From Lepidodermella squamata (taxonomy: Eukaryota > Animalia > Gastrotricha), in contig JBLDXI010000002.1 of NCBI GenBank assembly GCA_047495785.1, positions 1,736,001-1,800,000 on the forward strand: a stretch of DNA of 64,000 nt. The letters run 5' to 3'. Numbering within the stretch: the stretch's first letter is position 1; every line of letters begins with the position of its first letter. The notes below the pieces were generated by a model. That model did no database searches, was not told the DNA's origin, and was given only the letters and a program-made list of their open reading frames with translations. Below, in pieces: positions 1-37,561 of this stretch. The position numbers and the translations under genes are program-made.

Positions 1-517
1 TTATTTTTAACCTCGGAAACTTGACTTTTCAAAAAAAAACCCATCGCAACGGTATACCCCTTTGATTCCTGTCCTGATACGAATCCCGCAGCTATGCCAG
101 AATTAAAGGTATTTACGTCGAATCCCAAGGTGGCCAAAATTAGGACACTTTTTGCCATTATATATTGATTAGTCTGGTTAAAATTCGTCAAAAATAAATG
201 TTAACTCCTTTCGATAGTATATAAAACCACCCAGGTGCCTTCCTACAGCCGGGTTTAAACCCGCAAATTGAAACCTACTTCAATTCTGTGGCCGAATTTA
301 GAAGGGGGCAATCTAGTGCAAAGTCAAGTGTGAGTTTTTCAGACAATTTTTTAAATGGAAAACGCTGAAAATCTGAAAACTGACAGATTCAAAGAGACAG
401 GCGCCATGTTGCAGATTTTCTCACGCGGTCCCGAACAATCGCAAAAACTGGTCATCATTGTCCTACCAAACAATACTGAACTATCAGATTATCACAAAAC
501 AGCCACGCCGCTCGCCT

Positions 518-546
518 TATAAAAAAGGCCTGCCCTTCGTCAGATT
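518..546 (+). promoter_or_regulatory. Possible TATA box (TATAAAA) plus Inr-like TCAGATT upstream of the GH13 gene
   Basis: TATAAAA at 518 and TCAGATT at 540, about 110 nt upstream of the ATG. Confidence 0.35.
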
Positions 547-653
547 TCTTCATACATACTAGAGTGTAAGATTTGTATCTGAACAGCATTTCTGTTTGCG
601 TTCTCTTGTTGTCTTCGTTTTCTGGTTTCTTGTATCAATAACACTAAAATAAC

Positions 654-2994
654 ATGCCGAATCAACCCGCAGTTACATCGACGATCCGCGGCGCTATTGA
701 AGCCATTTCCCGCCCGTTTGCGCAATGTTTCAACGGCAAAGTTCCGATTCGACTTCCGTCTAATTCATCCCTACTTATCGACTCTAAATCTTCAAGATCA
801 CCCTCGCCAGTCGATGGTAAGAAATCTTTCATCTGGGACACTGACTGGTGGCGAAAGACTATCATCTACCAAATCTACCCTCGATCTTTCTGCGACTCGA
901 ATGGCGACGGCACTGGCGACTTGCGAGGCATTATTTCAAAACTCGACTATTTTACCTATCTGAACATCAACTGCATATGGCTGAGCCCGATCTACCAGTC
1001 GCCTATGCACGATCACGGCTATGACATCAGCGACTACAAGGCGATTGACCCGGTTTTTGGGACATTGCAAGACTTCGACGAGCTGATCGACGGGCTTCAC
1101 CAGCGTGGCATCAAGCTGCTGATGGATTTTGTGCCGAATCACACGAGTCATGAACATCAATGGTTCAAGGAGAGTTCGAAATCACGTGACAACCCTTACT
1201 CGGATTACTACGTTTGGTCCGATGGCATTGTTGATGAAGACGGAACGCGTCGCCCGCCAAACAACTGGGTAAGCCATTTTAATTTCAAATTTTTTGAAAT
1301 TTTTAAAATTTTAAGTAATTAAATTTTAAAATTTAAATTAAATTGCTAAACTTTTGAAATTTTTGAGATTATTGAAATTATTGAAATTATTGAAATTATT
1401 GAAGATTTTGAAAATTTTGAAAATTTAAAATTTAAACTTATGAAATTTAAATTTTTGTAATTTTTATTGACTTCGAATTTTCGATTTTTCGATATTTTTT
1501 TATTTTTTAGCTGAGCCTATTTGGCGGTTCCATGTGGCAATGGTGCGAATCTCGTCAACAGTACTACCTTCACCAATTTTTGCCCGAACAACCCGACCTG
1601 AACTACCGAAACCCGAAAGTTTGCCAAGAAGTTGAGGACGCACTCGCTTTCTGGCTCGAACGTGGCGTCGACGGCTTCCGCGTTGATGCCATCAAACACC
1701 TCGTCGAAGCTGAGAATTTGTTCCAGGACGAAGAGCTAACAAACCAACCCGTTCCGCCCGAACACTACGACTCGGTCCGGCACCGTTTAACGGCTGATCA
1801 GCCCGAAAATCACGCCATAATTCAGGGCTGGCGGCGGTTGCTGGACAAATTTCACGAACGCGATGGCTCGTACCGATTTATGGTGTCGGAAATTTACGAA
1901 GACGCCGATACTACGCTGCAAACGGTGATGGAGCACTACCACAACGGCTGCGATGCGCCGTTCAATTTCCGACTGATCAGCCATTTCAACCCGGAATCTG
2001 GCGGGTTAGGCCTGAAACACATCGTCGAAGAATGGATTCATACGATGCCGCCAGGAAAATGGCCGATTTGGGTGGTAAGTCTCGAAATTTCATTTCCCTG
2101 AATTTAATTTAATTTTTTTTATATTTCAGCTTGGAAATCACGACCAGCCGCGTATTGCCGATAAATTTGGGCCTGAATTTGCCGAGGCTTTGAACATCCT
2201 GTTGCTGCTGTTACCCGGCACTCCGGTCACATACTACGGCGAGGAATTGGGTATTCAAGGCCGAAATCTGCCGTTTGAAGAGACAAAAGACCATTTCTCA
2301 AAACGATTTGGCCCGGTTTGATTTCTGATTTTTCGTTTAATTTCAATATTTTTTCCTAATTTTTTAAAGGAACTTTACCACCTCTATTCGCGTGATAGAG
2401 CTCGTGGCCCAATGTGGTGGGATTCGTCAGAAAATGCCGGATTTTGCCCGGCCGAGGTGAAGCCATGGCTGCCGCCGCATGAAGAATACACAACGCGAAA
2501 TGTTGAGGTTTGTCTTTTTCGAAAAAATCACTGTTTTCCGTAAATTTTTTCAATTTTTTTAGGCTCAAAAGACGGTCGACAAAATGACGACGTTGCAGTT
2601 TTACCGTGAAACTGCCTTGCTGCGCCAAGAGGCTGAATTTCAGGACGGCACGTTCACGGTAGGCTACGCTTCAAGCAACCTGTTCACCTTCACGCGCCGC
2701 CTGCCTCATAATGGCGAAAATGCCGGGTTCCGCTACGACATTGTCGTCAACATCGGCAAGGAAGCCGAGTGTCTCGACACGCCGGCATCGACGCTTTTCA
2801 ACTACGACGCCAAGGCCGGGTTCATCGACGTCAGTAACGGCCGTCAGAAGCCGCGAATTCGCCTGCAAACTCACAATTTGAAGCCGGATCAAGAGAAAAG
2901 CATTGCGGCTTTCCCGTTCGCCCCGCTTACGATTTACCCGAGCCAGGCCTTTGTCATCCGATCGCGACCTGTCGACAAAATGAATGCCAATTAA
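654..2994 (+). CDS. GH13 alpha-glucosidase (maltase/SLC3A1-related), 5 exons: 654-1268, 1511-2074, 2130-2315, 2370-2507, 2563-2994
   Basis: WW..IIYQIYPRSFCDSNGDGTGDL, DFVPNHTS, PPNNW|LSLFGGS, YYLHQF..EQPDLNYRNP, catalytic GFRVDA / MVSEIY / LGNHD, YYGEELG; all GT-AG junctions keep frame. Confidence 0.93.
1369..1402. repeat. 9-bp tandem repeat (TTATTGAAA)n in GH13 intron 1
   Basis: ttattgaaattattgaaattattgaaattattga. Confidence 0.8.
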
Positions 2995-4260
2995 ATTGCA
3001 ACGACTTGATTAATATTTTTTTCCTTTTTTTCTCCTTTTTGCTTTTCATTATTATACTCGCTAGAGTGAGTGAGCCTTCGCATTAACTGCTAATTAGTTT
3101 CTTTCGAACTAAATAATGTAAATACCTGACTTGTACGAGTCAGGCCCTGCTTGTTAAAGTTTTCGCCGGTGTGATCTTGAATGATGTAAATAAATCTGTA
3201 TAAAATTGCATGCATGGTCAATTGAAGCGCGGCTTTGTTCGAAATCGATCATAATCAAGAGGGTCAATTAGTGTTTTTTTTAATTACACGCAGCCTTAAT
3301 TCCGGCCAATTAAGTCGGCAGACGGCTCTTGAATTCAAGTGCTTGAGCAGACATGAAGCCAGGTTCAAACTTATTTTGCAGTATAAAAGCAAATATTGTA
3401 CTGAGAGAAGCATCGCGACATCGGTAAAGTTTCGAACTATAGCCCTAATAAACAATTGATACAGAAAAAATACCGCTATTTCCGAAAAAACAAACAATCC
3501 ACCTTGAAATCTTTCCACCTCATTTCATGAGGCACAATCCTTTTCTCAAATAAATTAAAATTTGAACTTAATCTCAATCTAATTTTCCTAATTTTCTCTT
3601 AGTATTCAGAAGGTCCGTGCGCATCGTTCCTAAATAATTTACAGTTTTATCACTTAATAAATGTAATAAAAATCATTTTCATAATTACCAAGCATGCGCA
3701 TTATTTCTAGCGGTGAAAAATGAAATAATAACGTGCCTTTTTTGCGAGATTTTGCGCCATTGATACCGCTACCCGAATAAATTCCACCACTTCGGCGAGT
3801 AAATAATTCGCCGGGAAAACCCAAAAAATATTACAAAAAATACCTGCATTATACATTTCTAACAGCAGAACTTGTATATTACAGGAAATATTTTTTACAC
3901 TTTGGTGAACTGATGCGGAGGCGAGAACCCCTGAGAAACTAAATGTTGCTATATCTGTAGCGTAAACTATTCTTTTAGCGCTCAGAAGCTCAGAAGAGAT
4001 ATAAACGATCTGCGTGATCTTGATTGTTTTTAAATCGCAGCGGCCATATACATTGTAGCAAGTAAATATTTTCTGCAAACCTGTACCTATATTATGTTTA
4101 CGGGGAAAGATTCAAATCATAGACGGATTTCGAGGTAGCCAATTCAATACCACCTAACACTCCCTTTTTGCCTAAAATTATTGAAAGGTTTTTCATGTAA
4201 TTTGATTATAATATTTTAGGCTCATTAACTGAGCGCTGAAATAATTCGCAAAATTTTATT

Positions 4261-16000: not shown

Positions 16001-18723
16001 TATCGGCTTGAACAACGGGGTCCCAGTATTCGAGGCGGTAGTCGAAAATTACGTCGATCGGGAAGGAAAAGTTGCGGAAATACGCGAAATAGTAGTCAAC
16101 TTCATTCATCCCGCCGCCTTTCATATCAGGCGCTGTGTGCTCGAAGCGGAGACCAACGTGAATCCGCGTCGCCAAATAGCCGCAGACGCCAAAGTAGCAC
16201 GCGTAGATGATCATGACAATTATCGCTACTTTTGGCTGTAGCAAAAAAGGCGTGTAAATGTCGTAGAAAAAATGGCGCGATTTTTTCGACTGAGCCGATT
16301 CAGATTTGCCCTCTTCCAACGCCGATATGTCTGCCTTTTTTTTCTTAACAGCTTTCTTTCGATCACTTCCAGCGCTTTCTTCGAGAGTCGCGTTCGCTTG
16401 GACAATTGTCAATTCGTCCTCTTGGGACATGGTTGACTTTGGCGCAGTGCAGCACATTAAATAACAGACGCCGCCTTCTTTGTAATCTAAAAATAAAGAA
16501 AATTATCATTGACTGATCATCATTGAGAGTACTCGAACCGCCGTGAAAAATTCAGAAATTAGAAGCCCATTTTCTCAACAACCCTGATGGCTATCAACCT
16601 CTTTTTGATATCATTGGACTCCTCGTTCATTGATCTTGAAAGCGGTTTCAAAATCTCACTGGGTATGTCAAACATTTCGCCTAACCCCACTTTTACGGTC
16701 AATTTTAATTAAATTTTTTGAATAGCGTCGGTTTATTAAGGAGGAATTTGTTTACCTTCAATTGTTCGTGGCTTTATTTTGACACAGCAACATAAAGCGT
16801 GTTGGTTCTTTTTCTCTGATTGGGCCAGGAAAACCATGCAAGCCGGGAAAAGCGTCATTTGATACAGGAAATCAAACATGGCCGCAGCAAGGGAAACGTT
16901 TGAAAACACTTGTAACACCAAGAAAGAACTGGAGCTGTCTAAAAAAATTTAATTTAATTTAATTTAATTTTAACTTATTGTTTTTTACCGATGATGAAGG
17001 CCAGTGAGTTCATAAATGAAGTTACAGTTATTCCAGCCGCTGCTGTCCTCATCATAGCCGACATTCTCTTACGAACAATCCACTCTGGCTTACTGGCTCG
17101 ATACGCCTCGGTATACACGAAAACGTCATCGATACCAACGGCAAGCACAAGAAGGGGTATAGCGAAGCACAAATCGACGATTTGGTACTGAATCCAGCCC
17201 ATGAGGCCGAATGACGAAGCAACTCCAATGCAAGATGTCCCAACGCCGATAGGCCCAATCCATGGCAGAGTTCGATGAGCTGGGTAGCCGCGAAGAGTTG
17301 TCATTCCGGTGAAGAACATCAGGCAAATGACGCAAATAACAAGAAAAGGAATCAATCTAACGATTTCCATCCCGCTTCGATCTTGACGGCTCCAAGTTGA
17401 AGCTACGACCATTTCAAATTTATTGAGGCGGTGGAATGTCTTATTGTTAACGTAGCGCTTCTCGAGCCATTTCGTTACCTCTTGCGTCCAATTCATGACA
17501 ACATCGGCTAAGTCGTCGTCATCTTTCATGCAATAAAAAAACTGCATTGCCCCGATTCGTTGAACTTTGCTAGCCTTGAAGCCATTTCGCCACGTCTCGT
17601 TCGCATTGACAAGTTTAACCTCGCCGAAAATCGGCCCGCTCAACTGCGCCGTAGGCAGGTTCGAATCGAATGGGTAGTAAGTTGGATTATCACTCTGACT
17701 TTTCATTATATCCTGAAATAATTGCCGCTTTTCTGTATCGTTTTGCAATTCGAACAAAAAATCATTCTGCGCTTTGTACGTATTTAAGCCCAATTTTGTT
17801 AGAGAAGTACGAACGCCCTAGTGAGAAAAAACGTGAGAATAATTAAGGATGAAAGCTGAATGATGGATCTTACAGTTAATATTGAAAACTGAACGCAGCT
17901 TCCATCTGATCGGGTCTGGCAAATTTGCATGACTTTCGGGTCCGAGATGTTAGTTGAATAGAGGGCTGCGCGGAATTTTTGTATGGTGTAATTTTGGAAA
18001 GTTAAGATCGAGTCCAATTCAATTAGATCGTTCATCATGTTCGCATCTAAAAAATAACGGAAAAATTATCTATATTTAACTGTGCGCCATGTCTTCATAC
18101 AATTTTTGGAAAATAATATAAAACACAATTATAGGTATGGAAGGAATTATTTTCGTCAATTTTGACTCGCAAGAAATATCTGAAAAGTGATTTCAGGCCA
18201 ATAGAATTTGCAAAATTTGGTTCCGCTACGGCAAATTCTTAGATTGAATTTGGCTCACGTAAAATAAAGACCCTTTTCAAGATTTACCCAATATGCTGCC
18301 TGTTTTGTTCTTGGTCCTGATCATGAGTTGTAAATGAGGGCAGGTAGAATCCAGGCCAGCATCAGCGCCTACGCAAATCTTCGGCGTCTCGTTGCCGCAA
18401 TCGTAGGTTTTGTTACAATTTTCGCCATACTCATCACATCGGACACAGGAACAAACCGAATCGTAGCTGTTAAACTGAATTTTAGCCGTCATGTTGTTGA
18501 TGCCAGCCGAGCCGGACATGGGCCAAATTTTCAGGTCGTTGGTGAGGCGGGACAGCTGCATCATGCCCGGCGCCAGGATGACTGTTATCAGCAGAGGAAT
18601 GGCGATGAACCATACCGCCCGGTCGGCGATCAACTCGCCGTACCACACAAAGAACCGATCGACTAGTTTAGGGAAAGAGCTGAAAACTTTAAGGACGGGA
18701 TTCGGTTTTTTAGATTTGCCCAT
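13065..18723 (-). CDS. Patched-related (PTCHD3/Ptr-like, RND superfamily, sterol-sensing domain) protein A, about 8 exons
   Basis: N-terminal TM (YGELIADRAVWFIAIPLLI), SSD with PLLVLAVGIDDVFV..RMSAMMRTAAAGITVTS, FDFLYQMTLFPACM, second half with TMGYCVDFTAH and FHTLVVFPVLL. Confidence 0.9.
14180..14548. mobile_element. Second, inverted and more decayed copy of MITE family 1, in an intron of Patched-related gene A
   Basis: TA|CAGCGTGTCCT at left, degenerate TGGGACATATAG|TA at right; interior is the reverse complement of 11208-11597 (both give spurious ORFs with QAKKIHGKGFRNSKMR). Confidence 0.8.
14659..14882. mobile_element. MITE-like element, family 3
   Basis: CTGTATATATATCTATTAATTTTCGGT at left, ACCGAAAATTAGTAGATATACA at right; internal TTCGGT/ACCGAA repeats. 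Confidence 0.6.
16562..16702 (-). repeat. Dispersed repeat, family 4, intronic copy
   Basis: Reverse-complement match to 10645-10781. Confidence 0.72.
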
Positions 18724-19599: not shown

Positions 19600-21258
19600 T
19601 TAGTAGTTTAGCATAAAACACAAAATGAGTAGTATTATTTGAGATGAAACGCTTTCAGGAGATGACGAGGACACCGTAACAGGATTCTTCTGTTCATTCA
19701 AAAAACTGGCCGGCAATTTTGAATTCCCATAATTCGCTTGAAAGGCTTTTGCCGCTCGGAGGAGGAGAGGAAATTTCTGCGGTGTAGTCATCATAAATAG
19801 CCCAGCTGGTAGACCCTGGGGCGCATCAGGCTGAGGATCGCTGAACCCGAGTGGAATAGTCAGTGAAGGATAGCCGGTCCACGAGGCGAGGAGGACCAGA
19901 TTGATAGGCGATTTTAAGGAGGACGACCAATCTTTCAAAAACGCGTCGCTGTCGAATTTTTGCGGGAAATGCGGCACAGTCGGCCAGATGACTAAATCAG
20001 CATCGGCTAGAATTGTATTCAGGCTATTTGAAATCAACGCAGATACAGCGCTTTTGAAGTCTGCGGCATCCTTTTCGCACTTTCCCGCAATTTTCGAGAG
20101 ATTCAACATCCTTGACCAAGCTTCGTGGTAAGGATGCGGCAGCCTCTTCGAATCAACAACTTGCTCGACGCTGTGATAAGCATCGCTGGTGAAACGATTC
20201 GGATTTGAGAAGTAATCATCGTGCCACATGACGATGCAACTGCTGTAGTCGATGGAGAACATTCGCAGTATCGAAGGACCAACGGCTGTGAAGTCAACGG
20301 TGATATTTTTCACTACAGCACCCATTTTGCCCATATTATCCGCAGCGATCGAAAACAGTTTCTGCATAGTTTCGTCAACTTCATAGTTGAAATATCCCAG
20401 CGTGAAGGTATCGTAGGCCATAAGTTCGAAAACATTGATTTTTAGGCCATCTAAACTATTTAAGGAGGATTTCGTGAACTCGCCATCTCTTCCTGTCATT
20501 GCCTCCATTATTACCATCGCGTCATCGAAATTTCTCGCAATCGGGCCGACTACGTCTTGAAATTCGCTTGCAACAAAAACACCTTCCCGGCAACTGCAGG
20601 ATTTCAGAAGTTGGACAGGGGGTCTTATTCCAACAACGTCAGTCGCCGAAGCTGGTAAATTAATCGAAACGCCAGTCTCAGTCGCGATGCCTCCAACAGC
20701 CAGCATAGCACTAGCAGCCACTGCATTGCCGCCACTCGAGCCGTAAGTCGTATAAGTCAACGCGTAAGGATTCCTAACCAAACCGCCAGTCTCGCTGTGG
20801 GCCCAAGCTTCCTTACCAGAGAGGGGCGACATATTTGCCTTGCCAATGAAAATCGCCCCACGATCCTTACAATTCCTCACCACAGTCGCATCTTGTAGTG
20901 GGATTTGATTTTTAAACACATTTAGACCGTTTGTTGTAGCTATTCCGGCGATGTCAATGTTATCCTTGGCGACAAGGGGCGCGCAGTGTAGGCTGCCTTT
21001 GAGTTTCCGATTGGATTTGAAGTAGGAATCGAGATCATCAGCTTCCTGCAAAGCCGTCGGGTTCGTGCTGATAATAGCACCCGTAAAACTGCTACCACCA
21101 TATTTTTCAATCCGATTCAGGTAGCCGAGAATAATTTGACGGCATGTTACATTGCCTTTAGAAATTGCCGCTTGTATGCCAGCTATTGTAGCTGTCGTTA
21201 AGTCAAATCCATTTGCATTAGCCAGTGATGAGATTAATAAATAGAGGAAAATGCGCAT
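19600..21258 (-). CDS. Amidase-signature family enzyme, intronless, signal peptide, possible GPI anchor
   Basis: LHCAPLVAKDNI (Lys), GKANMS, RNPY...YGSSGG (cis-Ser), ATETGVSINLPAS...VVGIRP (nucleophile Ser), DVVGPIAR, GYPSLTIPLG..GLPAGL; Ser-rich spacer and hydrophobic C-terminus. Confidence 0.92.
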   Translation of the reverse strand: MRIFLYLLISSLANANGFDLTTATIAGIQAAISKGNVTCRQIILGYLNRIEKYGGSSFTGAIISTNPTALQEADDLDSYFKSNRKLKGSLHCAPLVAKDNIDIAGIATTNGLNVFKNQIPLQDATVVRNCKDRGAIFIGKANMSPLSGKEAWAHSETGGLVRNPYALTYTTYGSSGGNAVAASAMLAVGGIATETGVSINLPASATDVVGIRPPVQLLKSCSCREGVFVASEFQDVVGPIARNFDDAMVIMEAMTGRDGEFTKSSLNSLDGLKINVFELMAYDTFTLGYFNYEVDETMQKLFSIAADNMGKMGAVVKNITVDFTAVGPSILRMFSIDYSSCIVMWHDDYFSNPNRFTSDAYHSVEQVVDSKRLPHPYHEAWSRMLNLSKIAGKCEKDAADFKSAVSALISNSLNTILADADLVIWPTVPHFPQKFDSDAFLKDWSSSLKSPINLVLLASWTGYPSLTIPLGFSDPQPDAPQGLPAGLFMMTTPQKFPLLLRAAKAFQANYGNSKLPASFLNEQKNPVTVSSSSPESVSSQIILLILCFMLNY

Positions 21259-26213: not shown

Positions 26214-27648
26214 ATGTTCGATGAAGTCTTCCAGCCAATCATGGTTTTCGTAACAGGTGCTACCATTCTGCAGAACGGCCTCATCTTGCTTGGCACGCTA
26301 ATTAACTGGCGAAACGTTCGCCGAACTGTCCCGCAACGTGCTATTATTCTTTCAACAACAATGGCTGACCTCATAATGGGATCCGTAAGTCTTACAAAAT
26401 CAGCTTTCAGCAATCATTTGATTGTTTTTTAAGGTGGTTATGACTCTTGGGTTGTATTTTGAATTTCGTGGCGGCTGGGACCTCGGAAATCAACTATGTG
26501 ATTTGTGGATTAGCTGTGACATTCTTTGCTCCACCGCCTCCATTATTTCACTCGCATTTCAGTCCATAGATAAGTATTACTCGCTATGGTCACCGAAGCG
26601 GTACACCCCCAAGATTCGCCACCGATGGAATTGTTTGTTTGTCGCAATAACCTGGGCCCTGTCAGGGTGTGTCGCCTTATCAGCCGGGGCCTCTGGCTGG
26701 GCGCGAAGTGATGCAGCATCCCATTTGAACGAACATACAAAACTCAATATAGCCGACGATATAGTAGACCTGGACAACATTGAGCTGCATATAATTATGC
26801 ACGAGCAATGGAAAGCCATGCATCAGCCGTCGGAAGACTGCAATATCACAGGCAACCCAATGTTCGCGCTGTACTCTGCTGCCGTATCTTTCTACGTTCC
26901 AGCCATCGCTATCATTTACTACAGCATCCAAATCAGGAAGTTGGCCTTCATGACAGCTGAGCAGCGGAAGAGGAAGAAGCAGATGGCGAGAAAAAGCCGT
27001 GACGCTAAAACAGGGTCGAACAATTTGAACACCTCCGAGTTCAAAGAAGCCGTCCTGAAGGCAGCAAAAGCTCAAGTTTCGAGGTCGAGGCGCTCGCAGC
27101 TATTCGGCCGCGAGAGGCGAGTTGCTGTTCTTTGGATGGTCACCATCGTCACATTCCTCTTCTGCTGGGCTCCTTTCTTCATCGCCCACCCGATGAACTG
27201 TTTCGGCATTTCAATACCAGAGAAAGTTCTCATGGTACTGCCCTGGCTCGGATACTCACATTCGATCGTAAATCCGGTGCTTCACGCGTTCCTCGAACCC
27301 GAATACCTCCGCTCGTTTGCGAAACTGGTTGTACTCTGCTTCGCGCGTTTTCTCGATAATAGACGCAAGAACCGGCAAAGCGTCCCAATACCGCCAAGCC
27401 AAATGCGGAGGCGAAGATACCCACCTGTTGATGCCGATGGCAATGTTATCGAAATCAGATTTTCAGACGAAGCGGGCGATGAGGTAGAACGACCGCCAAG
27501 CCCACCTTATTCATCTCCTTTAAGAGAAGTGGGGCCTCCTTTAGATCAAATAATTACCGTATTCGATCAGGAAAGCCGCCGGATCAGTACGGAAGTCATC
27601 AAAAACAATCCACCCGATACCTCATCAATGCGAACAGTTTCGACTTAA
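26214..27648 (+). CDS. Class A biogenic-amine receptor (dopamine D1/octopamine-beta-like, divergent); exons 26214-26384, 26434-27648
   Basis: MADLIMG, W.LG..LCDLWISCDILCSTASI (TM3 Asp), DKY, YSAAVSFYVP, FLFCWAPFF, WLGYSHSIVNPVLH. Confidence 0.88.
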
Positions 27649-27704: not shown

Positions 27705-30700
27705 TTATGCAGTATCATAAGGGTCGCTCAGTTTCTCGACATTGGTAACCATGTCCGATAGCAAGGCCGGCGCGATTCGCCGTATAGGTATCGGCTCCAT
27801 TCGGACGTTACCTGGTATGGCGAACGGGCCAGTTTTATCTGATGTAGCAACGCTGTGGTTGAATTCGAGTTCTCGGATGATTTCGTTAGCCATCATTTTC
27901 GTCTCGATTCTGACCCGCTTTTCTACCGGTATCGGTCTGTCGCATTTAGGATGTGGCCTCCTCATTATTGACCTTGCAATAGAAACATGGTTCAGCTTAT
28001 TCTTCGCATCACGCCTGATTGTTGAGAAGGGGCCGAAGTAGAGCAGCAAAACAGGTAGGAACACGAGGCAGTGAAGCAAAGACATGGTAATGGCAACAAG
28101 GAAAAATTTGAACCAGATGCTGTAAACGTAGGCTCGAGATGTTGCTAGGCAAAGCATTGCCAAGAAAACGCTTATCGATGATTCGAGAAGTAACGGCGTC
28201 ACTGAGCTGACTGCATTGATTGTCCTCTCTTTCAAACCAGCCGTACTGCATGATGTTAGGTACTTTCTCAAAATGGCCGAAATAAGTTCAATGCTGTATG
28301 CCATAGTCACCATTAAGCATATCATCTAAATTTGGCAATATAGGACTTCAAAATGTTGTAGAAGATTTGGAGGTGATAATTACTGAATATTGGTCGAAAT
28401 CGACTTGCCATTGGCAAGTTACCGATATTATCCCGAAAGTTAGACTGCTCGATAAAATAATCACCCAAGCTGCAATGATCAAATTCTGGAGAGAAAACTT
28501 TAATTTGAAACATCAGGAAATAGCACTCACCGGATTGAAGATGAAACAGGAGAGAAATATCACAACTAGCTCCAACAGGATATGGTAGGAAGCAACTAAC
28601 ACAATCTATTGGAACCAACCTCATTAGGGACAACTTCAGCATTTAGAATGATCACCTTCTGCATTGGCTCCCCGCTGTCAAATTCTGTCGAGTAGAATTC
28701 AATGTCGAAGAAATCGTTGTAGTGAGTCTTGACGTTGCGAAGACCTGAAAGAACGCTACGAGTCGACTCCAAATTGAAACAGTTGACGGCGTAGAGAACA
28801 AATCGAGATCCAACGATTCTCGGCATCTTTACGTCGTTATGAAAGACCGCGTTTTCATCGTACTCCATGTCAGCGGATGGCGCCGTTCTGTTGCCATCTT
28901 CGTCTTCGTAGGAATCCCTGAATTCAATCTGCTCAGTCGATACATCCGCAAATCTGATATCATAGACGTAACTTGCTGGCGTGCGTTTGTCTGTGAAAAA
29001 TTTCTCGCGCAGCGTGAAGGTGAACGATTCCTCGGTTGATATGTTCAACTTCCGAGCTGAGGCGAAATTCAAGAAATCCCAAAGCCAGTTTCGGTTGAAG
29101 TACTCATTAGCGATATTGGAGACGGTATGAAGGTCTCTGTAGAATGCAATAATTTTCTGCTGGGTATCAGGATCCCAATATTGAAGGTAAGGATCGGCGA
29201 ATATCACATCGATGGAAAAGGAGTAATTTCGGAAATATTTGTAGTGAAGCTGGATGTCATTCATCTTTCCCGCCGCTGCCATAGGTAACGCATTCTCTGG
29301 CCGAAATCCAACGTCAATCCGCGAACAAAGAAATCCACACATAACACAGTAGCCAACGAAGAAAATTATCACGAACACCGTCACTATTCATTAAAGGAAA
29401 GCTGGTTTACACAAATGTAATAGGGATCAAAATTACCTGGTCTCTTTAACAAAAAGGGTAGGTACTTTGTTTTTACGTAATCCCTTGCCTGAGATTTTAA
29501 AGCAGTTGGTAACGGGATAACGTAATCGATAGTAAGATCCGGCGTTATAGCTTTCTCGTCGTCCTCATCATTTTTCCTTGTCAGAGTCACCCAAGGGGCC
29601 GTGCAGCAGATTGTGGGGCAGAAGTGGGCTTCTTCCTCTGGTTTGAATATCTCCTTAGGGTTAACTCGTGCTCGGACTTTGCAGAAGCAGCAACATAACG
29701 AATGGCTGTTTGTCTTCTCAGCTTTCCCGAGCAAATGAATACAGGCTGGTAAGAAGGTTAACCGAAAAATGAAGTCGAAGATACTGGCGATTATAGCAAC
29801 AACGGAGAACAGCAGGAGTCCAGGAAAATTATGGCATAAGATCACTAATTTATAGGAAATTGATTGGCTCAGTTGAGGCTGTTAACCAAATCTTACCTAT
29901 TAAGAAAGGTGCCATATCTCTCAGGAAAGAAGTGAAAGCTTGCGGCGCATATTCTCTCACGGCAATCGCTGTCCTTTCTCGAACGTCCCATCTCGGATCA
30001 GTTTTCCTCCATGCTTTTGAGTAAGCAAGGGAATTCAGGGAGCTCAAAGCTAAAAGTCCAAATATAACGATGTACTATTGGATGGAAAATACTTATACCT
30101 AGAATTATCATTGGGATGGAAAATGAGCTATCGTCGATTTTCAAACCAGTCCATCCTAATAGGCCGAAAGCAGCAGATGTTGCCATGGAACTGGATAAAA
30201 CAACGAGAAGCCCCAGCCAAGGCATTCCGCGATGTACAGGATAGCCGGCCATAGTCATCAGCCCAATCAAAATGACGAGAACCGCATGGCATATCGCTAC
30301 AATCGGAACCAACCTTCGCGTTTCTTTCTCGTGAAGATAGCTGTAAGAAGTTGAGTAGGAAACTTTGAACGCCTTATGGGTTTTGTTTTTGATATAACGC
30401 TCTTCCAGCGATTTTATCGCCTGCAGTGTCCAGTTTGTCAAAGACGCTCTATCCTTCGTGTCATCAAGGCAGTAGACCATTTGCATGGCGCCTATCCACT
30501 TAACTTTCGCGGCTTTAAAGCTTCCGGTTTGCTTCAAATTAGCCTCCTGATTCTCGTAAATGACGTTCCCGTAAAGGGGACCGATAAACTGGCCATATTC
30601 AAGCTCGTACGGGTAGGTTATCATTCGACTGCCCTGTGAATCGAGCAAACTTCTAAATTGATCCTGTTTTTCGACATCATCCCGCAGATCGACGAAAAAC

Positions 30701-31374
30701 TGAGTTTGGCTCGAGTAGCTAGACAAAGATCCGCCAGGTAGCACAGCAAGCTGTTGCCTAACTCCGGTAAGAAGCGAGTATTGAATACAACTGTCATCCT
30801 TCCGCCTTTTCTGGCAAATTGTCCATCGCGAATCGTTGATACTGTGAAAAACAGCCGCCTTGAAATTTTGAATCGAAAAAATCGAAAAAGTGACATTAAT
30901 GTCGAGCTCAAATAATTGCAAGATTATTGCCGGGTCGACTAAGCTCAAGTTCTGAGACGTGATAACAATACGGAAATTCGGGCACTTCGATTCGATAAGC
31001 TGGTCGTCGTATTGGTTAGCTATGCAGGGTTGAATCACCGAGCAGTTTGCGCAGATCGGGTCGCAGATGGTTTTCTGACTCTTGAAAACCGATTTCGCAG
31101 TCATGTTGTTCAGTTGGGTGTGTCTGGGCTGTAGAGGCTTCATCGACACGTCCATTCCCGAACCTTCAATCCGCGACAGGCCTGGGACCATGACAAGAAA
31201 TACGAGTATGGACGCAGCTATTAACACAACGGCTTTGTCGGCTACAAAGCCCCCGTAATTGTAGAGAACAGCTGAAATTCGCCTCGTGATAAGGCCATTC
31301 CCACATTTTGTGTCCGCAGCTTTTCGATTTCCAGTTGAGGCCGTCGAGTTAGTCGAAGTCGTTGCCGAGGTCAT
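27705..31374 (-). CDS. Patched-related protein C, divergent paralog, multi-exon
   Basis: YGGFVADKAVVLIA, CQKRRKDDSCIQYSLLTG, IGAMQMVYCL, FDFIFRLTFLPAC, YFRNYSFSIDVIF, LHCLVFLPVLLLYFGP are collinear with A and B. Confidence 0.85.
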
Positions 31375-31703: not shown

Positions 31704-32235
31704 TCAATTGTATCTCCCGCCCATTATATCAGCAGCCATTTTTTGAGCCCTGTTTCAAGACAAAAAATGTGCGTAAGTATAAACGCGAGATCTTCAAGGT
31801 CAAACCAAACGTAGAATGCGACATTGCGATTGCAGACAGCGGGCGAGCCGAGAACTTTTAAACACCGATGAAACCTTTCTTGCCGAATTTGGAGGAGTAA
31901 TTTTTTCAAATAATCGTCCAGTATAATGCGTCCTCTTCCTGATGCGATGAGTTGCCTGATCCCTAAAAATTAAGATATTGATGTATCGCACAATGAGAAA
32001 ATCTTGGAATCTCACTATCTTCCTTTGAAGGCTGCTCAACGGATAGCAGATCTCTTTCATTATATTGCCTGAGTCGGCGATCGACACCCATTTCTTCCAT
32101 TGATTTCAAGGCATCAGGCTCTCCTTCGATGTTCAAACCGAGATCGCCTCTAGTTGCAGGAAAGAATTCTTCAGCGCTATTAAGGTGGACATATAAAATA
32201 GCCGCTAGAGCTGACAATAAAGAAAAAACTGTCAT
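31704..32235 (-). CDS. Small secreted Cys-loop peptide precursor N1 (140 aa); exons 32235-32016, 31962-31806, 31749-31704
   Basis: Signal peptide MTVFSLLSALAAILYVHLNSA; spliced C-terminus LLLQIRQERFHRCLKVLGSPAVCNRNVAFYVWAQKMAADIMGGRYN*; homologous to N2 and N3. Confidence 0.8.
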
Positions 32236-32441
32236 TTTACGATTTCAGCATGAAAAGCATGATTGCTTGATTTTTGATACAACACCCCTGGGGTTATTTT
32301 TGTTTGTCTTTGCACTTGTTTATTTATTCAGCGAATGTATTGACTCATCATATTATTAATAATGGTCAACTCTGCAAAATCAAAGCGTCATGCTGAGATC
32401 AGCGCACACGCTCTGAAAACCGATATTTTTATTAAGGTGGC

Positions 32442-32893
32442 TCACATCGGTATGATGATGTTGTTGTCTTCGTTGTTATTATTATTGGTATTTTCCCCGG
32501 CCTTGATTGCGTCTTCGATGAGTTTTTGGGTCCATGCGGCGTAGGCTTTGCTGTTACGGTTGCAGGGCCCCTGAGAGCTGACGACTTTCACGCAGCGGCG
32601 AATCTGCTCTTGTCGCACAAAGTTCATCACGTCGCGCATTTCGTCTTCGCTTTTGACAAAATTTTGCAGCTTTTGCTTCGTTGAGAAATGGCGACCTGGT
32701 TTCGACGCAATGGCATTACTCGACACTGGAAGCAATAAAAAAAATTTACGAAAATTAGGTCACACGCGCTAAGACTTGGCTAACGTGATATTTGATTTGG
32801 GTCATCCAGGAATAAACGAAACCTGCAGCTCACTGGTATAATAAGCAAGCAATTCAAAATAAAAACAGCTGTGAAATTAATGGAAAGCACCAT
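32442..32893 (-). CDS. Small secreted Cys-loop peptide precursor N2 (130 aa); exons 32893-32785, 32725-32442
   Basis: Signal peptide MVLSINFTAVFILNCLLIIPVSC; phase-1 intron; VMNFVRQEQIRRCVKVVSSQGPCNRNSKAYAAWTQKLIED. Confidence 0.8.
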
Positions 32894-33440
32894 TATTTAA
32901 GGTCTTGGCACAATACAAAAATTGATGGATTTGACCATTGGCTTCAAGTGAGAATTTTCTAGGACGCCTTTTTTTAATATATTTGTATTGATCTAGGATT
33001 TAATTATCGGCGAAGCCTGTTCTGCGTAAGCACAGGAGGCGTCAGTAAATAATCATCACGGCGGACAATGCGCTGGTGGACCATGATTGATACGTGGTCA
33101 TCAGAGAATCGGCGCGTGACGAGTGCCCCTTGAAAACCCGCCGACGAAAAGGCGCAATTCAACTTCAGCACTTCCTATCAAAATATTCCATCTAAAAACA
33201 ACAAGAAAAGCAGCACCCATTAAACTGATTTATGAGTTTATGAGGATTCCTGTAAAAACGCGTCATGAAAGATCCAACTTAATTAAATTATATTTTTATT
33301 GGCAACTTTATAATGAAAAAAATAATTCTCTGTAATAATTGCTTGCGATTTAAATTTGTTCGAGAATTTTCAACATATATTTTTATCACAAATCATCCAG
33401 TGAACGAAACGATTTCTCCCTTCAGAATATTTCCCCAATT

Positions 33441-33798
33441 TTATTGAAGGCTTCTTTGCGCGCTGAGATCGGCGGCGAGTTTTCGCGCCCAGGCGTTGAA
33501 CGCCGATTTGTTGCGGTTGCACATGGCTGGCGAGGAGAGCATTTTCAGACATCTGCGAACTTGTTCCTGTCGAATTTGTTGCAAGATAGCCGGGTCAATG
33601 GCCGATTTCTGATCGCCATCTAAAAGCGCGACTACAAAATAAATTGATTGAAAAAATTCGCTTTTTTATCTTCAAGTATTTTATACCAGATTGCTGTCTT
33701 TTGTTACTGTGTTTTGAGTTCCATGACACGGCGTTAACTTGAAAAGCCAGAAGAGTAATTGCGAGGAAAGAGCCGAGTAACAACGCAGTTGGTGCCAT
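33441..33798 (-). CDS. Small secreted Cys-loop peptide precursor N3 (100 aa); exons 33798-33687, 33631-33441
   Basis: Signal peptide MAPTALLLGSFLAITLLAFQVNA; KR site followed by QQ; phase-1 intron; ILQQIRQEQVRRCLKMLSSPAMCNRNKSAFNAWARKLAADLSAQRSLQ* (this frame is absent from the ORF track). Confidence 0.82.
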
Positions 33799-34541
33799 TT
33801 TTGAAATACGAAACAGATATTTATTCTTGAAAATTGCGATTTAGTATATATACGCGACAATGCGAAATATAACAGCTGCCTCAGTATATATAATCGAATT
33901 ATTTCAAACGCGGCGGGCCGGACTCGGGGTGCTTCCGATGCATAATTTATCTTCCATATGGTTATGATGATGCGTATAGGCCATTATCTCTAAAAATTGC
34001 GCTGATCTATTGGAGTTGAAATTTCATCGAGTGGGCGGAACACACGCCGTGGTAAATATTTAATTCCTATAATATATAAAGTTAAAATCAAACCGGATGT
34101 ACACCTTTGCGTCACTACCTATATTGAAACGATTTGGAATTTATTTTTTCCCCGACTATACGCATTTCATAAAGTGACCACGCGATTTTTGTGAGAATTC
34201 GGGCAAATATTGACAGGTCATTCCATTTGAAAGCTATGCAATTGATCAGGCATAAGAGACATAGGATTCAAAAATAGGAAAATCAAGGAATCGGAGACTC
34301 CGACTTGAGCATAATAGATAATAATCCACGATAATTATTAATTATTTCGGGTAGCACTTACCACCTTACTTGGAGCAAGTCAAGAAGCAATATAAAAAGG
34401 TGACCTCATTCGTATCGGAAAGTAATAATGATGAAAAAAACATCTGCTAAGGTGTCTGCAACCGATAAAAAAGCTTGATAATTATTGGAAAAAATCAGAC
34501 GCATATTTTTTCGGTTGCAATAATTTTCGCGATAAAATAAT

Positions 34542-35856
34542 ATGGCTGATAAATGGAATTCCTTTGATGAATCTTGGGTTTGTCTGGACAATTTTACGAA
34601 GTTGGGCTGGGATGTGCCTCACTGTTGGTTTATGTACCTACAACAATTAAACCGGGTCAACTCACCTGCGGCTCAAATAGCCGAAGCAACCGCTTTAGGC
34701 ATCGTAGCTTTGATTGGAATTGCAACGAATTTGTACGTAATTTTCGCGAGATTGCGCCCGGCTTTCCTCGCCCTTGGAAAACCAGCAGCACCTGTTAACC
34801 AAAGGAAAAAGCCTGTGCTGAGGTTAGAGCTCATCTTCCTGTTAACATTTCATTCAATTTCAAGTTTTGTCCTCGAACTATTGGCTATTATATTTCTCGT
34901 GGCGAGATTGACTGATGACTGGTTGATGGGAAATGCAGGCTGCATCGGGTTCTTCATCACACTTGTCCTATCATTTTGCGTATTAATGGCGTCAATGGCT
35001 TTGATAGGCGTTGAGCGATGTCTAGCTATCTGCTATATTTCCAACGATGCAACGCCATCGACTATTCCAAGCCATCATCCGCAAAACCGACGCAGACAAT
35101 ACCGAGCTATTGCATTCATCCTCGTCTTTATTTTTTTCTGGCTGCTTTATTTCTCCGCTTGTATGTACGTTTTTGTCATCGAACGACTCGCAGCTGTTTA
35201 CCCGATTTACATTCGCGACAAATATTCACTCGGGCGATATGACCGAGATGTGATGATTTGCGCATTTTTCACCCAAATGAAAGACCCAGATGGCGGCACG
35301 AATTCGACTTATATCAATTTTATCTTCCTATTGGGCTCCATTATGCTCCCAGTGCCTGCTTTAATAATCAGCTACGGGTGAGACATTTTTTCATTTTTAA
35401 TATAATTTAAGGAGGATTTTTTTCAGCAAAATTTTTTACACAGTTCGGAAATCAGTGCAGCGTGACGAAAATCGGCGTAGGATGAATCGGCAAACAATTG
35501 TTGACAAATTTCTAGCTCAAATCCACCTGAGCCAAATGAAAGGCACCGATAGCAGCGAGTCGAGTACGATAATGCCTGTGACTAATAAGATCCGGCGTCG
35601 GGACATTCAAATGGCGAAGAGAACTTGCCTAGTTGTGTTTTTCTTCATTTTAAGCAACATTCCTATAGCTATTTACACGGTATTCCTCCTGCAGGATGCT
35701 GAGCTCGATAAACAAACGCAGACATATGAATTCTTGATATGTTCCATGTTCATGTATATCAATGCAGCGATAACACCGCTGATTCATTGCTACAGCGGAG
35801 CCAAGAAAAATCAAAACGCACAGAACAACAATATTGAAAGAGATACTGCGCTATAA
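34542..35856 (+). CDS. Orphan class A GPCR 1; exons 34542-35377, 35427-35856
   Basis: 7 hydrophobic helices, W.MGNAGC, MALIGVERC, ECL2 Cys, PALIISYG|KIF, TM7 INAAITPLIH. Confidence 0.85.
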
Positions 35857-36267
35857 TTTCCGAATTTTTTAAATAAATATATTAATTTTTCAATATTTCC
35901 ACTAATTTTTTTCACCTTCCATTCTGATTTAAAAATAAGGCAAGCAATTCAGGTTTCGCTTTGAAATATGGTGAATCTGATAGACGATCTCTAAAAAATC
36001 AGTGCCGAGCCAAAATCGATAATCGATAATCAGTGATTTTTCAATCAATGAAGCATTTGAGACTTGAAATTTTGTTTCCCAGAAGTATTTCAGAGTTTTT
36101 GGCATTTAGTTCTCAAGCAAATTAGCATATTTGGCCTGTGAGGTGTTCAATAAATATCGACAGATGTCAATTATCGGCGGGTCATGAACTCTTATCAGGC
36201 TTTTGCGATAACGTTCACGAACTCATTTTTTCTCAATTTTTTTATATTGAGTCACGATGCGGCTGAA

Positions 36268-37561
36268 ATGGTCGGATTTTTCGATATTGTTGATTTCGAT
36301 AATTCGACCGAGTATCAGGACAGTTCTTGGGACGAATCTTTTATCTGTATAGAAAATCACACAGGCCATCAAGACTCTCATTGCTGGTTCCTGTACCTTC
36401 AACAGCTCAATCGGCATAACCCAGACGTTGAACGATACATCGAGGCGATTTTCCTTGGTTTTTTGTGTTTGATCGGAATTCCGGCGAATGCAATCTCCGT
36501 TTATAACTACTATCAACGCCGCATTATTCGCGAGCTTTTCTTCCTAATTTGCCTACTCGCGATTTGCAATGTCCTATTCAGCATTTTGGGTGGTGCGCTG
36601 GTCATAGCTCGGCTGAATGATGATTGGATACTTGGAAACGTGGGGTAATATAGTCCATTTTTATGAAAATTTTGTATTTCTTTTGTTCAGATGCATAGGG
36701 TATTTTGTTGGATCGCTGTTCACGGTTTGTTTAGCAATTTGGACCATGGCCCTAATAAGCTTGGAACGGGCCTATTGCATTTGCCAGTCCTTTAAATCGC
36801 CCCAAATTCGGGCGAAGGCTTGGCATATCGCCCTGGGCACTGTCCTGCTGGTCGCCCTGGACCTAGGTATTTGGTACTATTGGTATTTTTACAAAAGCGC
36901 CGCTACAGTTCTTCAAGTTCACGTTCGCCAAAAACTCAACTCAGAGCATCATTTCAACCGAGAAGTTGCTGTATGCGCCATATTTCAGCAAGACAAATCT
37001 GACACGGATTTACTGAAATTTTCAACTGCTATTGCCTGCGTCCTGATTTTAGCTACAATTATCGTCCCAATGCCGATAATTGTCGTTAGCTATTGGCGAA
37101 TTCTTCGCAAAATTCGGCAGAGTTTCCGCTACAGCAAACGACTAGCGAAATCAGCCGGGCGACGGCGGTCATCCAGCCGTCCGTCAATTCGAAACCAGGT
37201 GACGTCTCTATTCAAGTCTTCAACTCGAAGAAGCGAAGTCTACCTGGCCAAGGTCATGCTTTTTGTCATGATCGCATTCTTCTTTTGCTACATCCCGGTC
37301 AACATTTTCGCTTTTGTATTGGCGTTCCTACCCAACGCGACAGCACCGCCTAGCGTTCAAACGAGCCATTTCTTGATTTGTCTATTGCCAATCTACCTTA
37401 ATTGTGCGATTTCACCGTGGATTCAGTCGTGGAAGCCGGGTAAACACGGCTCGAGGGACTCGATTATTACTGTAAAATCGCCTCAAATTATAGCGTCGGT
37501 TGAAGATATCACCTCGGCTCCTGATTTCAGTTCGAAAACTGAGTTGGAAATGGATTTTTAA
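36268..37561 (+). CDS. Orphan class A GPCR 2, paralog of GPCR 1; exons 36268-36644, 36691-37561
   Basis: WILGNVG|C, WTMALISLERA, PIIVVSYWRIL, FFFCYIP, LNCAISPWI; shares DES..C..N...HCWF.YLQQLNR with GPCR 1. Confidence 0.87.

Follow-up and report, generated by a model that had tools for sequence, protein, structure and literature searches.

Genes for three small secreted proteins and two orphan class A receptors, head-to-head in a gastrotrich genome, are probably chance neighbors

When genes for small secreted proteins stand head-to-head with genes for orphan receptors, do they encode ligands together with their receptors, or have unrelated genes simply become neighbors? The question is raised by a locus in the gastrotrich Lepidodermella squamata, within a stretch of 64,000 nucleotides (contig JBLDXI010000002.1, positions 1,736,001 to 1,800,000; hereafter, the window, whose own numbering is used throughout). 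Here, three genes for putative secreted proteins, pep1, pep2 and pep3, diverge from two genes, G1 and G2, for orphan G protein-coupled receptors (GPCRs). A sequence-only reading of the window took these five genes for a candidate cluster of linked and co-duplicated ligands and receptors. We favor a different explanation, to which we assign a probability of about 0.62: the two families would be unrelated and independently duplicated, and their members would be chance neighbors in a gene-dense genome rich in GPCRs and small secreted proteins. The adjacency of the peptide and receptor genes, we infer, has no functional meaning.

The arrangement itself is well founded. When both strands are read, the five gene models fall into two opposite-strand arrays, pep3-pep2-pep1 on the minus strand followed by G1-G2 on the plus strand (Table 1), and the head-to-head placement of three peptide genes and two orphan class A GPCRs is borne out by the gene models, by Pfam matches and by transcription. 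The divergent region shared by the two arrays was correctly delimited in the sequence-only reading; it spans 743 bp and contains only short open reading frames (ORFs) of 41-61 aa. Local duplication on both sides is likewise confirmed. In tblastn searches within the window, pep1 matches pep2 at 2e-11 and pep3 at 2e-13, and by this sequence similarity pep1-3 are paralogous, well beyond chance; G1 and G2, which are about 30% identical and have single introns at different positions, match each other at E-values of about 1e-38 to 1e-41. Apart from these cross-matches, nothing else in the 64-kb window matches either family.

In the rival explanation, the basic hairpin proteins encoded by pep1-3 would be the ligands of G1 and G2, docking at two sites, in chemokine-like fashion, on an acidic surface formed by the receptor N-terminus and the second extracellular loop (ECL2), and the linkage would result from co-evolution or from shared regulation by a divergent promoter. 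We consider this improbable. The arrays are separate (P-P-P and G-G) and unequal (three against two), not interleaved or made of repeated ligand-receptor units, which supports chance adjacency and leaves no co-duplicated units of ligand and receptor genes. In the maximum-likelihood tree, G2 groups with its relative P0002 (support 90/95) and G1 with its relative P0001 (80/84), rather than G1 with G2; because each receptor groups with a metagenomic relative of its own, the G1/G2 duplication is, on this phylogeny, old, predating the split from these relatives, and yet peptide relatives are undetectable there. The receptors of the family share a strongly conserved N-terminal motif, and the peptides have no recognizable relatives, which also speaks against pairing.

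The sequence-only reading had named the absence of linkage in relatives as grounds for refuting the pairing, and the single test available leans in that direction. Eight loci with members of the receptor family (L001-L008, about 53 kb in all) were searched with tblastn, with the regular expression Cys-x(8-12)-Cys-[NSDK]-R-[NSD] and with a hidden Markov model (HMM) of the peptide core. No peptide homolog was found in these 53 kb around the eight family members, the best core-HMM E-value being 0.24; the same HMM recovers the three peptide genes of the window at 1e-30 to 1e-39. P0001, the closest relative of G1, lies on the 9.4-kb contig L001, with a gene for a Cys-loop channel upstream on the same strand and a sulfotransferase-like gene downstream, and this contig is devoid of peptide genes and of G2-like genes. 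The best relative of G2, P0002, lies on a 2.4-kb contig, too short for the linkage test. Thus, homologs that co-occur and stay linked in related genomes did not appear at any of the eight loci, and the cognate pairing gained no support. Chance adjacency is further supported by the old receptor duplication taken together with the neighborhood of P0001, by an unrelated 7tm_1 gene (26422-27648) only 7 kb from the cluster, and by locus L004, at which a family member stands head-to-head with another GPCR.

Two of these loci have features of their own. On L004, the two GPCR genes occupy 450-1728 (minus strand) and 2782-4143 (plus strand), so the receptor family also clusters with itself; in the second of them the N-terminal motif is degenerate and tblastn gives no hit at 1e-3, its membership being judged by eye. 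On L006, the receptor gene P0008 is tail-to-tail with two paralogous secreted 4-Cys proteins, encoded by minus-strand ORFs from 6496 (137 aa) and 5093 (114 aa). Both contain a CxxC pair with two further Cys after it, have no Pfam hit on record and show no similarity to pep1-3. This arrangement fits the view that small secreted genes are simply common in such genomes. Where both gene classes are so frequent, an array of three peptide genes may well come to adjoin a GPCR by accident.

What kind of receptors are G1 and G2? By sequence, they are divergent class A receptors. Exon 2 of G2 matches the Pfam 7tm_1 family with 70.6 bits (E 1.9e-19; cut-off 30.5 bits), and the two exons of G1, compared separately, reach 21.5 and 25.0 bits, each under the cut-off, the homology of G1 to G2 at about 1e-38 notwithstanding. 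A profile of G1 and G2 retrieved 15 proteins at E up to 1e-3 from 1.84 billion representative sequences, four of them below 1e-10. Seven of the best eight family members could be traced (P0001-P0006 and P0008), and all seven come from three ENA metagenome assemblies. Other searches added nothing to this: a word-indexed search with exon 2 of G2 gave no match, and a scan of Joint Genome Institute (JGI) metagenome contigs with the receptor N-terminal alignment produced 599 pattern matches, none of which was confirmed. In a phmmer search of PDB sequences the receptors had only marginal matches, to C5aR1 and histamine receptors at E 1e-3 to 3e-3 and to a neurotensin receptor at about 0.1; the best E-value, about 1e-3, extends over 75 residues, and we see nothing here that ties the family meaningfully to a named receptor.

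Conservation across the receptor family is highest in a motif at the N-terminus, SW[IV]C…C[WF]Fx[YF][LI]QQ[FL]NR, kept by the best eight relatives. The acidic N-terminus of G1 bears DESWVC…HCWFMYLQQLNR, and in both receptors of the window an acidic DESxxC, an N-x-T sequon and HCWFxYLQQLNR are found just before the first transmembrane helix (TM1); these N-termini have isoelectric points (pI) of 4.3-4.7. The sequence-only reading spoke of an acidic, Cys-paired N-terminus; motif and acidity hold for G1 and G2, but the second Cys is not invariant in the family, two of the best eight members having W or S in its place.

An AlphaFold2 (AF2) model made with the family alignment predicts, with confidence, a bundle of seven long transmembrane helices (7TM; predicted TM-score, pTM, 0.80); it was built for P0002, which is 38% identical to G2, rather than for the spliced window proteins. 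In this model, the N-terminal motif forms a β-hairpin adjoining a long ECL2 β-hairpin. A Foldseek comparison returned at least 500 GPCR matches in PDB with E < 1e-3, the nearest solved folds being opioid, somatostatin, orexin, cholecystokinin (CCK), apelin and chemokine receptors (E about 1e-9, TM-score up to 0.83 by target); opsins, namely melanopsin and squid rhodopsin, also occur among the matches. G1 and G2 may thus be described as orphans of a small, lineage-restricted class A branch whose outer face, as modeled, resembles that of peptide receptors.

A comparison with class A GPCRs that have peptide or protein ligands brings out both sides of this resemblance. Like them, the G1/G2 family has a 7tm_1 match, a predicted 7TM bundle with a long ECL2 β-hairpin, and, in the receptor alignment, the TM3-ECL2 pair of Cys. 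The same alignment shows that ER is kept at the DRY position with a variable third residue (ERC in G1, ERA in G2), and that the C-x-x-P motif of TM6 is kept in G2 as CYIP, its counterpart in G1 being SNIP. At these micro-switches the receptors are divergent. Unlike these receptors, the family has [ST]PxxQ/H in place of NPxxY, a motif of its own at the N-terminus (SWxC…C[WF]FxYLQQ[FL]NR, the predicted β-hairpin), and no significant sequence affinity beyond its 15 relatives. At the NPxxY position in TM7, G1 has TPLIH (35740-35790), G2 has SPWIQ (37385-37435), P0002 has SPLIQ and P0001 has SPLLQ, while the more distant matches of the family retain NPxxY. That Asn and Tyr should both be lost in a sub-branch under purifying selection is unusual. 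We also considered whether these proteins might be opsins, and rejected this, as TM7 in G1, G2, P0001 and P0002 lacks a Lys in the Schiff-base position or its vicinity.

There is one more peculiarity in G1, an insertion of 17 residues in the first intracellular loop (34745-34795) that occurs in no other family member. The insertion has the size of an intron, but an unspliced intron was rejected as its source: there is no fitting in-frame GT..AG pair, and the segment is GC-rich and carries a synonymous variant. Judged by its sequence, the insertion is probably coding.

The peptide genes encode a different kind of product. All three predicted proteins begin with a hydrophobic stretch of 20-23 residues ending in a small-residue site (VNA, VSC and NSA), and each gene has a phase-1 intron after this leader region; the signal peptides, judged by inspection and a hydropathy scan, suggest that pep1-3 are secreted and that the leader is cleaved off. 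In the pep1 product, the signal peptide is followed by a KR site and then by a core consisting of a basic helix, a Cys-x10-Cys loop and a second helix. Alignment of pep1-3 shows a common core of about 45 residues, RQEx(3)RC-x10-CNRN, in which 11 residues (RQE, RC, K, S, CNRN), both Cys among them, are invariant, and with a conserved A-[FY]-x-x-W-x-x-K-[LM] helix after CNRN. Outside the core the three proteins are mutually unrelated, C-termini included. pep3 has the same core with an extra intron within the second helix, and its third exon restores a C-terminus that can be aligned with that of pep1.

The core is basic, with a pI of 9.2-11.4 and a net charge of +3 to +7. An AF2 model of the pep1 exon-2 product, computed from the three-sequence alignment, has a helix at residues 13-32, a loop and another helix at 40-61 (mean predicted local distance difference test score, pLDDT, 68.6); the loop in this model is seven residues long and contains the second Cys. 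In the sequence-only reading, this block was said to be conserved, basic and closed by a disulfide. The basic core with two invariant Cys stands, and the disulfide that probably closes the Cys-x10-Cys loop is predicted from the Cys pair.

We propose, then, that pep1-3 would be basic proteins that are secreted and, once the signal peptide is removed, measure about 75-120 aa. A helix-loop-helix hairpin is the predicted fold of their 45-residue core, and a single Cys-x10-Cys disulfide probably shuts the loop. Most likely, they would act extracellularly as whole small proteins, as signals or in defense, rather than as short, processed and amidated neuropeptides. G1 and G2 would be old paralogs whose extracellular face, composed in the model of the N-terminal β-hairpin motif and the long ECL2 hairpin, has an architecture typical of peptide or protein receptors. 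No dibasic sites are conserved across pep1-3, their positions being variable (RR precedes the first Cys in two of the proteins and HR in pep3), and no C-terminal G-K/R amidation signal is conserved in the three proteins; because of this, it is doubtful whether pep1-3 are peptide precursors of the classical type. Somatostatin/allatostatin-C and elevenin are made with a signal peptide and have one loop, of about ten residues, between two Cys, and the short peptides are excised at conserved dibasic sites. pep1-3 are similar in having a signal peptide and one Cys-Cys loop of about ten residues. They differ in the size of the conserved unit (about 45 residues), in the helices predicted on both sides of the loop, in the RRC/RRC/HRC context of the first Cys, and in having no amidation signal.

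No relative of the peptides came to light. Neither pep1 exon 2 nor the three-sequence alignment found a peptide relative when compared with 5.8 billion proteins in a word-indexed search; Pfam at E up to 10 gave no match beyond a chance one to L22; in the ESM Atlas recognition stayed under threshold and the matches were incoherent; a scan of JGI metagenome contigs with the back-translated peptide motif gave 271 pattern matches, none confirmed; and Foldseek found no match to the AF2 hairpin in PDB. Such searches are weak for a fast-evolving core of 45 residues, and their outcome means that no relative is detectable rather than that none exists.

The same properties fit another reading of pep1-3, as cationic, amphipathic helical-hairpin proteins of antimicrobial type, a fast-evolving tandem family of defense effectors with no signaling role and no link to the receptors. 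A signal peptide ahead of a strongly basic core, the predicted helix-loop-helix with one loop disulfide, tandem triplication with variable flanks, the lack of relatives in any search and a pep1 transcript that is abundant relative to its neighbors all speak for this reading. On the other hand, the 11 invariant positions, with their polar RQE…CNRN signature, look more like a specific binding surface than like a membrane-active helix, the net charge of the whole pep3 protein is only +2, and we found no similarity to a known antimicrobial family. We regard this predicted activity as possible, though rather unlikely.

All five genes are transcribed. The evidence comes from an RNA run, X2, which is one whole-animal library; a second run, X1, is apparently DNA of the same or a sibling lineage, with 78% of sampled words present. 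The depth of X2 contigs is about 50 for pep1, about 23 for pep2 (core exon), about 2 for pep3, 4-7 for G1 and 2-7 for G2, and they do not cover the intergenic stretches 34050-34649 and 35650-36449. Two X2 contigs directly cross the pep1 junction 33631|33687. In the same assembly, a loose end at 33058 is the reverse complement of a cDNA adapter, which we take to be of the SMART type, a poly(A) loose end lies on the plus strand at 32419, and at least 15 joints between opposite strands occur across 32000-37400; all of these look like artefacts of the library or of the assembly.

Transcription bears on a third alternative, in which the 743-bp region is a shared bidirectional promoter that drives pep1 and G1 in the same cells, the products not binding one another. 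The region is short, divergent and devoid of any other gene or transcript, and pep1 and G1 are both transcribed in one library. Their RNA depths, however, are about ten-fold apart, gaps of a few hundred bp are normal in the window (G2 starts 327 bp past the end of G1), and the case depends on a single RNA run; we consider such co-regulation very improbable.

Comparison of X1 with the window supports the gene models and informs on selection. Indels in exons are multiples of three (+3 at 34572, -9 at 37450 and +3 at 37491), and those in introns are not, in all three introns with one listed (pep1, G1 and G2), that in the G1 intron being 1 nt. With 40 of 124 variant sites listed for these two samples, the substitutions are synonymous in 16 of 19 cases in G1 and in 11 of 16 in G2, together 27 synonymous against 8 nonsynonymous; because the listed substitutions are mostly synonymous, we conclude that G1 and G2 are under purifying selection. 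An X1 contig across 32163-33636 (1474 bp, covering pep2 and exon 2 of pep1) has no differences from the window. With an identical peptide stretch and mostly silent receptor differences, the cluster, as far as its sequence tells, does not look like a fast-evolving recognition locus. As a separate observation, X1 holds two contigs over positions 36875-37195 of G2, one identical to the window and the other differing at 19 of 321 positions (6%), so that, over a few kb, haplotypes or copies diverge in a mosaic fashion, as seen when 36875-37195 is set against 32163-33636.

Linked ligand-receptor loci are known from the pheromone/receptor (P/R) mating-type loci of basidiomycetes and from the Brassica S-locus with SCR/SP11 and SRK. 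In these systems linkage is kept across related species, and the loci are highly polymorphic and subject to balancing or diversifying selection. The gastrotrich cluster is similar in that genes for small secreted proteins physically adjoin receptor genes, with several paralogs of each. It differs in that there is no linkage at the nearest receptor relative, and in that nonsynonymous diversity is not elevated, the 32163-33636 stretch being identical and the listed receptor variants mainly synonymous. Our search of the literature found nothing on linked neuropeptide-GPCR genes or on the peptide and receptor families described here.

Chemokine systems are a close parallel to the docking proposed. 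A chemokine is a small, basic, disulfide-containing secreted protein, its class A receptor has an acidic N-terminus, and there are tandem families on both sides; in vertebrates, the clusters of ligand genes and of receptor genes are not adjacent to each other. The locus with pep1-3 and G1/G2 shares the small basic Cys-containing secreted proteins, the acidic receptor N-termini and tandem duplication of both. pep1-3 are unlike chemokines in their predicted fold, a helical hairpin with one disulfide as against a β-sheet/helix fold with two, and there is no homology between them.

Several points weigh against chance adjacency and should be set beside the evidence for it. A linked pair, too, would be expected to show divergent adjacency across just 743 bp, duplicates in both arrays and a lineage-restricted distribution of both families. 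The charges of the basic peptide core and of the acidic receptor N-terminus are complementary, and the modeled receptor fold, with its long ECL2 β-hairpin, is closest to peptide and protein receptors. The linkage test relied on distant relatives (20-38% identity) and short contigs, the orthology of P0001 and G1 is only moderately supported, and a fast-evolving core of 45 residues could escape detection at such a distance. Still, none of the points in favor of the pairing (adjacency, duplication, restricted distribution, charge, outer face and shared transcription in one whole-animal library) is specific to it. Among class A receptors, both the acidic N-terminus and the ECL2 hairpin are generic. 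As for the complementary docking site suggested by the sequence-only reading, the contrast of charges is real, but the receptor motif, the best-conserved stretch of the family, is kept in relatives where no peptide is detectable.

Table 1. Coordinates of the peptide and receptor genes and of the region between them, in window numbering
Feature	Position	Strand	Structure	Product or length
pep3 gene	31704..32235	minus	exons 32235..32016 + 31962..31806 + 31749..31704	140 aa
pep2 gene	32442..32893	minus	exons 32893..32818 (predicted from phase and splice signals only) + 32725..32442, 92-bp phase-1 GT..AG intron	119 aa
pep1 gene	33441..33798	minus	exons 33798..33687 + 33631..33441, 55-bp phase-1 intron	100 aa
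Divergent intergenic region	33799..34541		sequence from pep1 ATG to G1 ATG	743 bp
G1, orphan rhodopsin-class GPCR	34542..35856	plus	exons 34542..35377 + 35427..35856, 49-bp intron after TM5	421 aa
G2, paralogous GPCR	36184..37561	plus	exons 36184..36644 + 36691..37561, 46-bp intron at TM3 start; start alternatively at Met29	443 aa

The surroundings of the cluster are compact: a gene occurs roughly every 2-3 kb, the GT..AG introns measure 46-92 bp, and G+C is about 42%. Rfam has no match in the window. Genes nearby encode an α-amylase, Patched-related sterol-sensing proteins, an amidase, peritrophin-type chitin-binding and PAN-domain proteins, Cys-loop channels, a sugar transporter, ankyrin repeats and a PPEF/rdgC-type phosphatase; in the ESM Atlas, the phosphatase leads to a cluster rich in arthropods. 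The third rhodopsin-class GPCR, some 7 kb from the cluster, is a plus-strand ORF of 408 aa (7tm_1 E 5.8e-30) that falls outside the G1/G2 family (tblastn E 0.011); its first exon or exons must lie upstream. Two Patched-related genes with sterol-sensing domains are on the minus strand, at 16975-17793 and 27705-31374, the second ending just downstream of pep3. Amid spliced animal genes there is also an intronless amidase ORF of 552 aa (19600-21258, minus strand; Pfam Amidase E 3e-56).

In a compact genome rich in GPCRs and in peptides, adjacency alone is weak evidence for pairing, and the novelty of the locus is modest, as both new families belong to known kinds of genes. As it stands, the locus adds an unannotated family of secreted proteins, predicted to be helical hairpins and without detectable relatives, and a small divergent branch of class A GPCRs, marked by an N-terminal motif that is conserved and unusual and by degeneration of NPxxY. 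Should the two families turn out to be cognate after all, they would constitute an animal protein-hormone or pheromone system, lineage-specific and physically linked, with a receptor subfamily of its own; this would be a rare animal example of a linked ligand-receptor module, and a whole receptor subfamily would be deorphanized.

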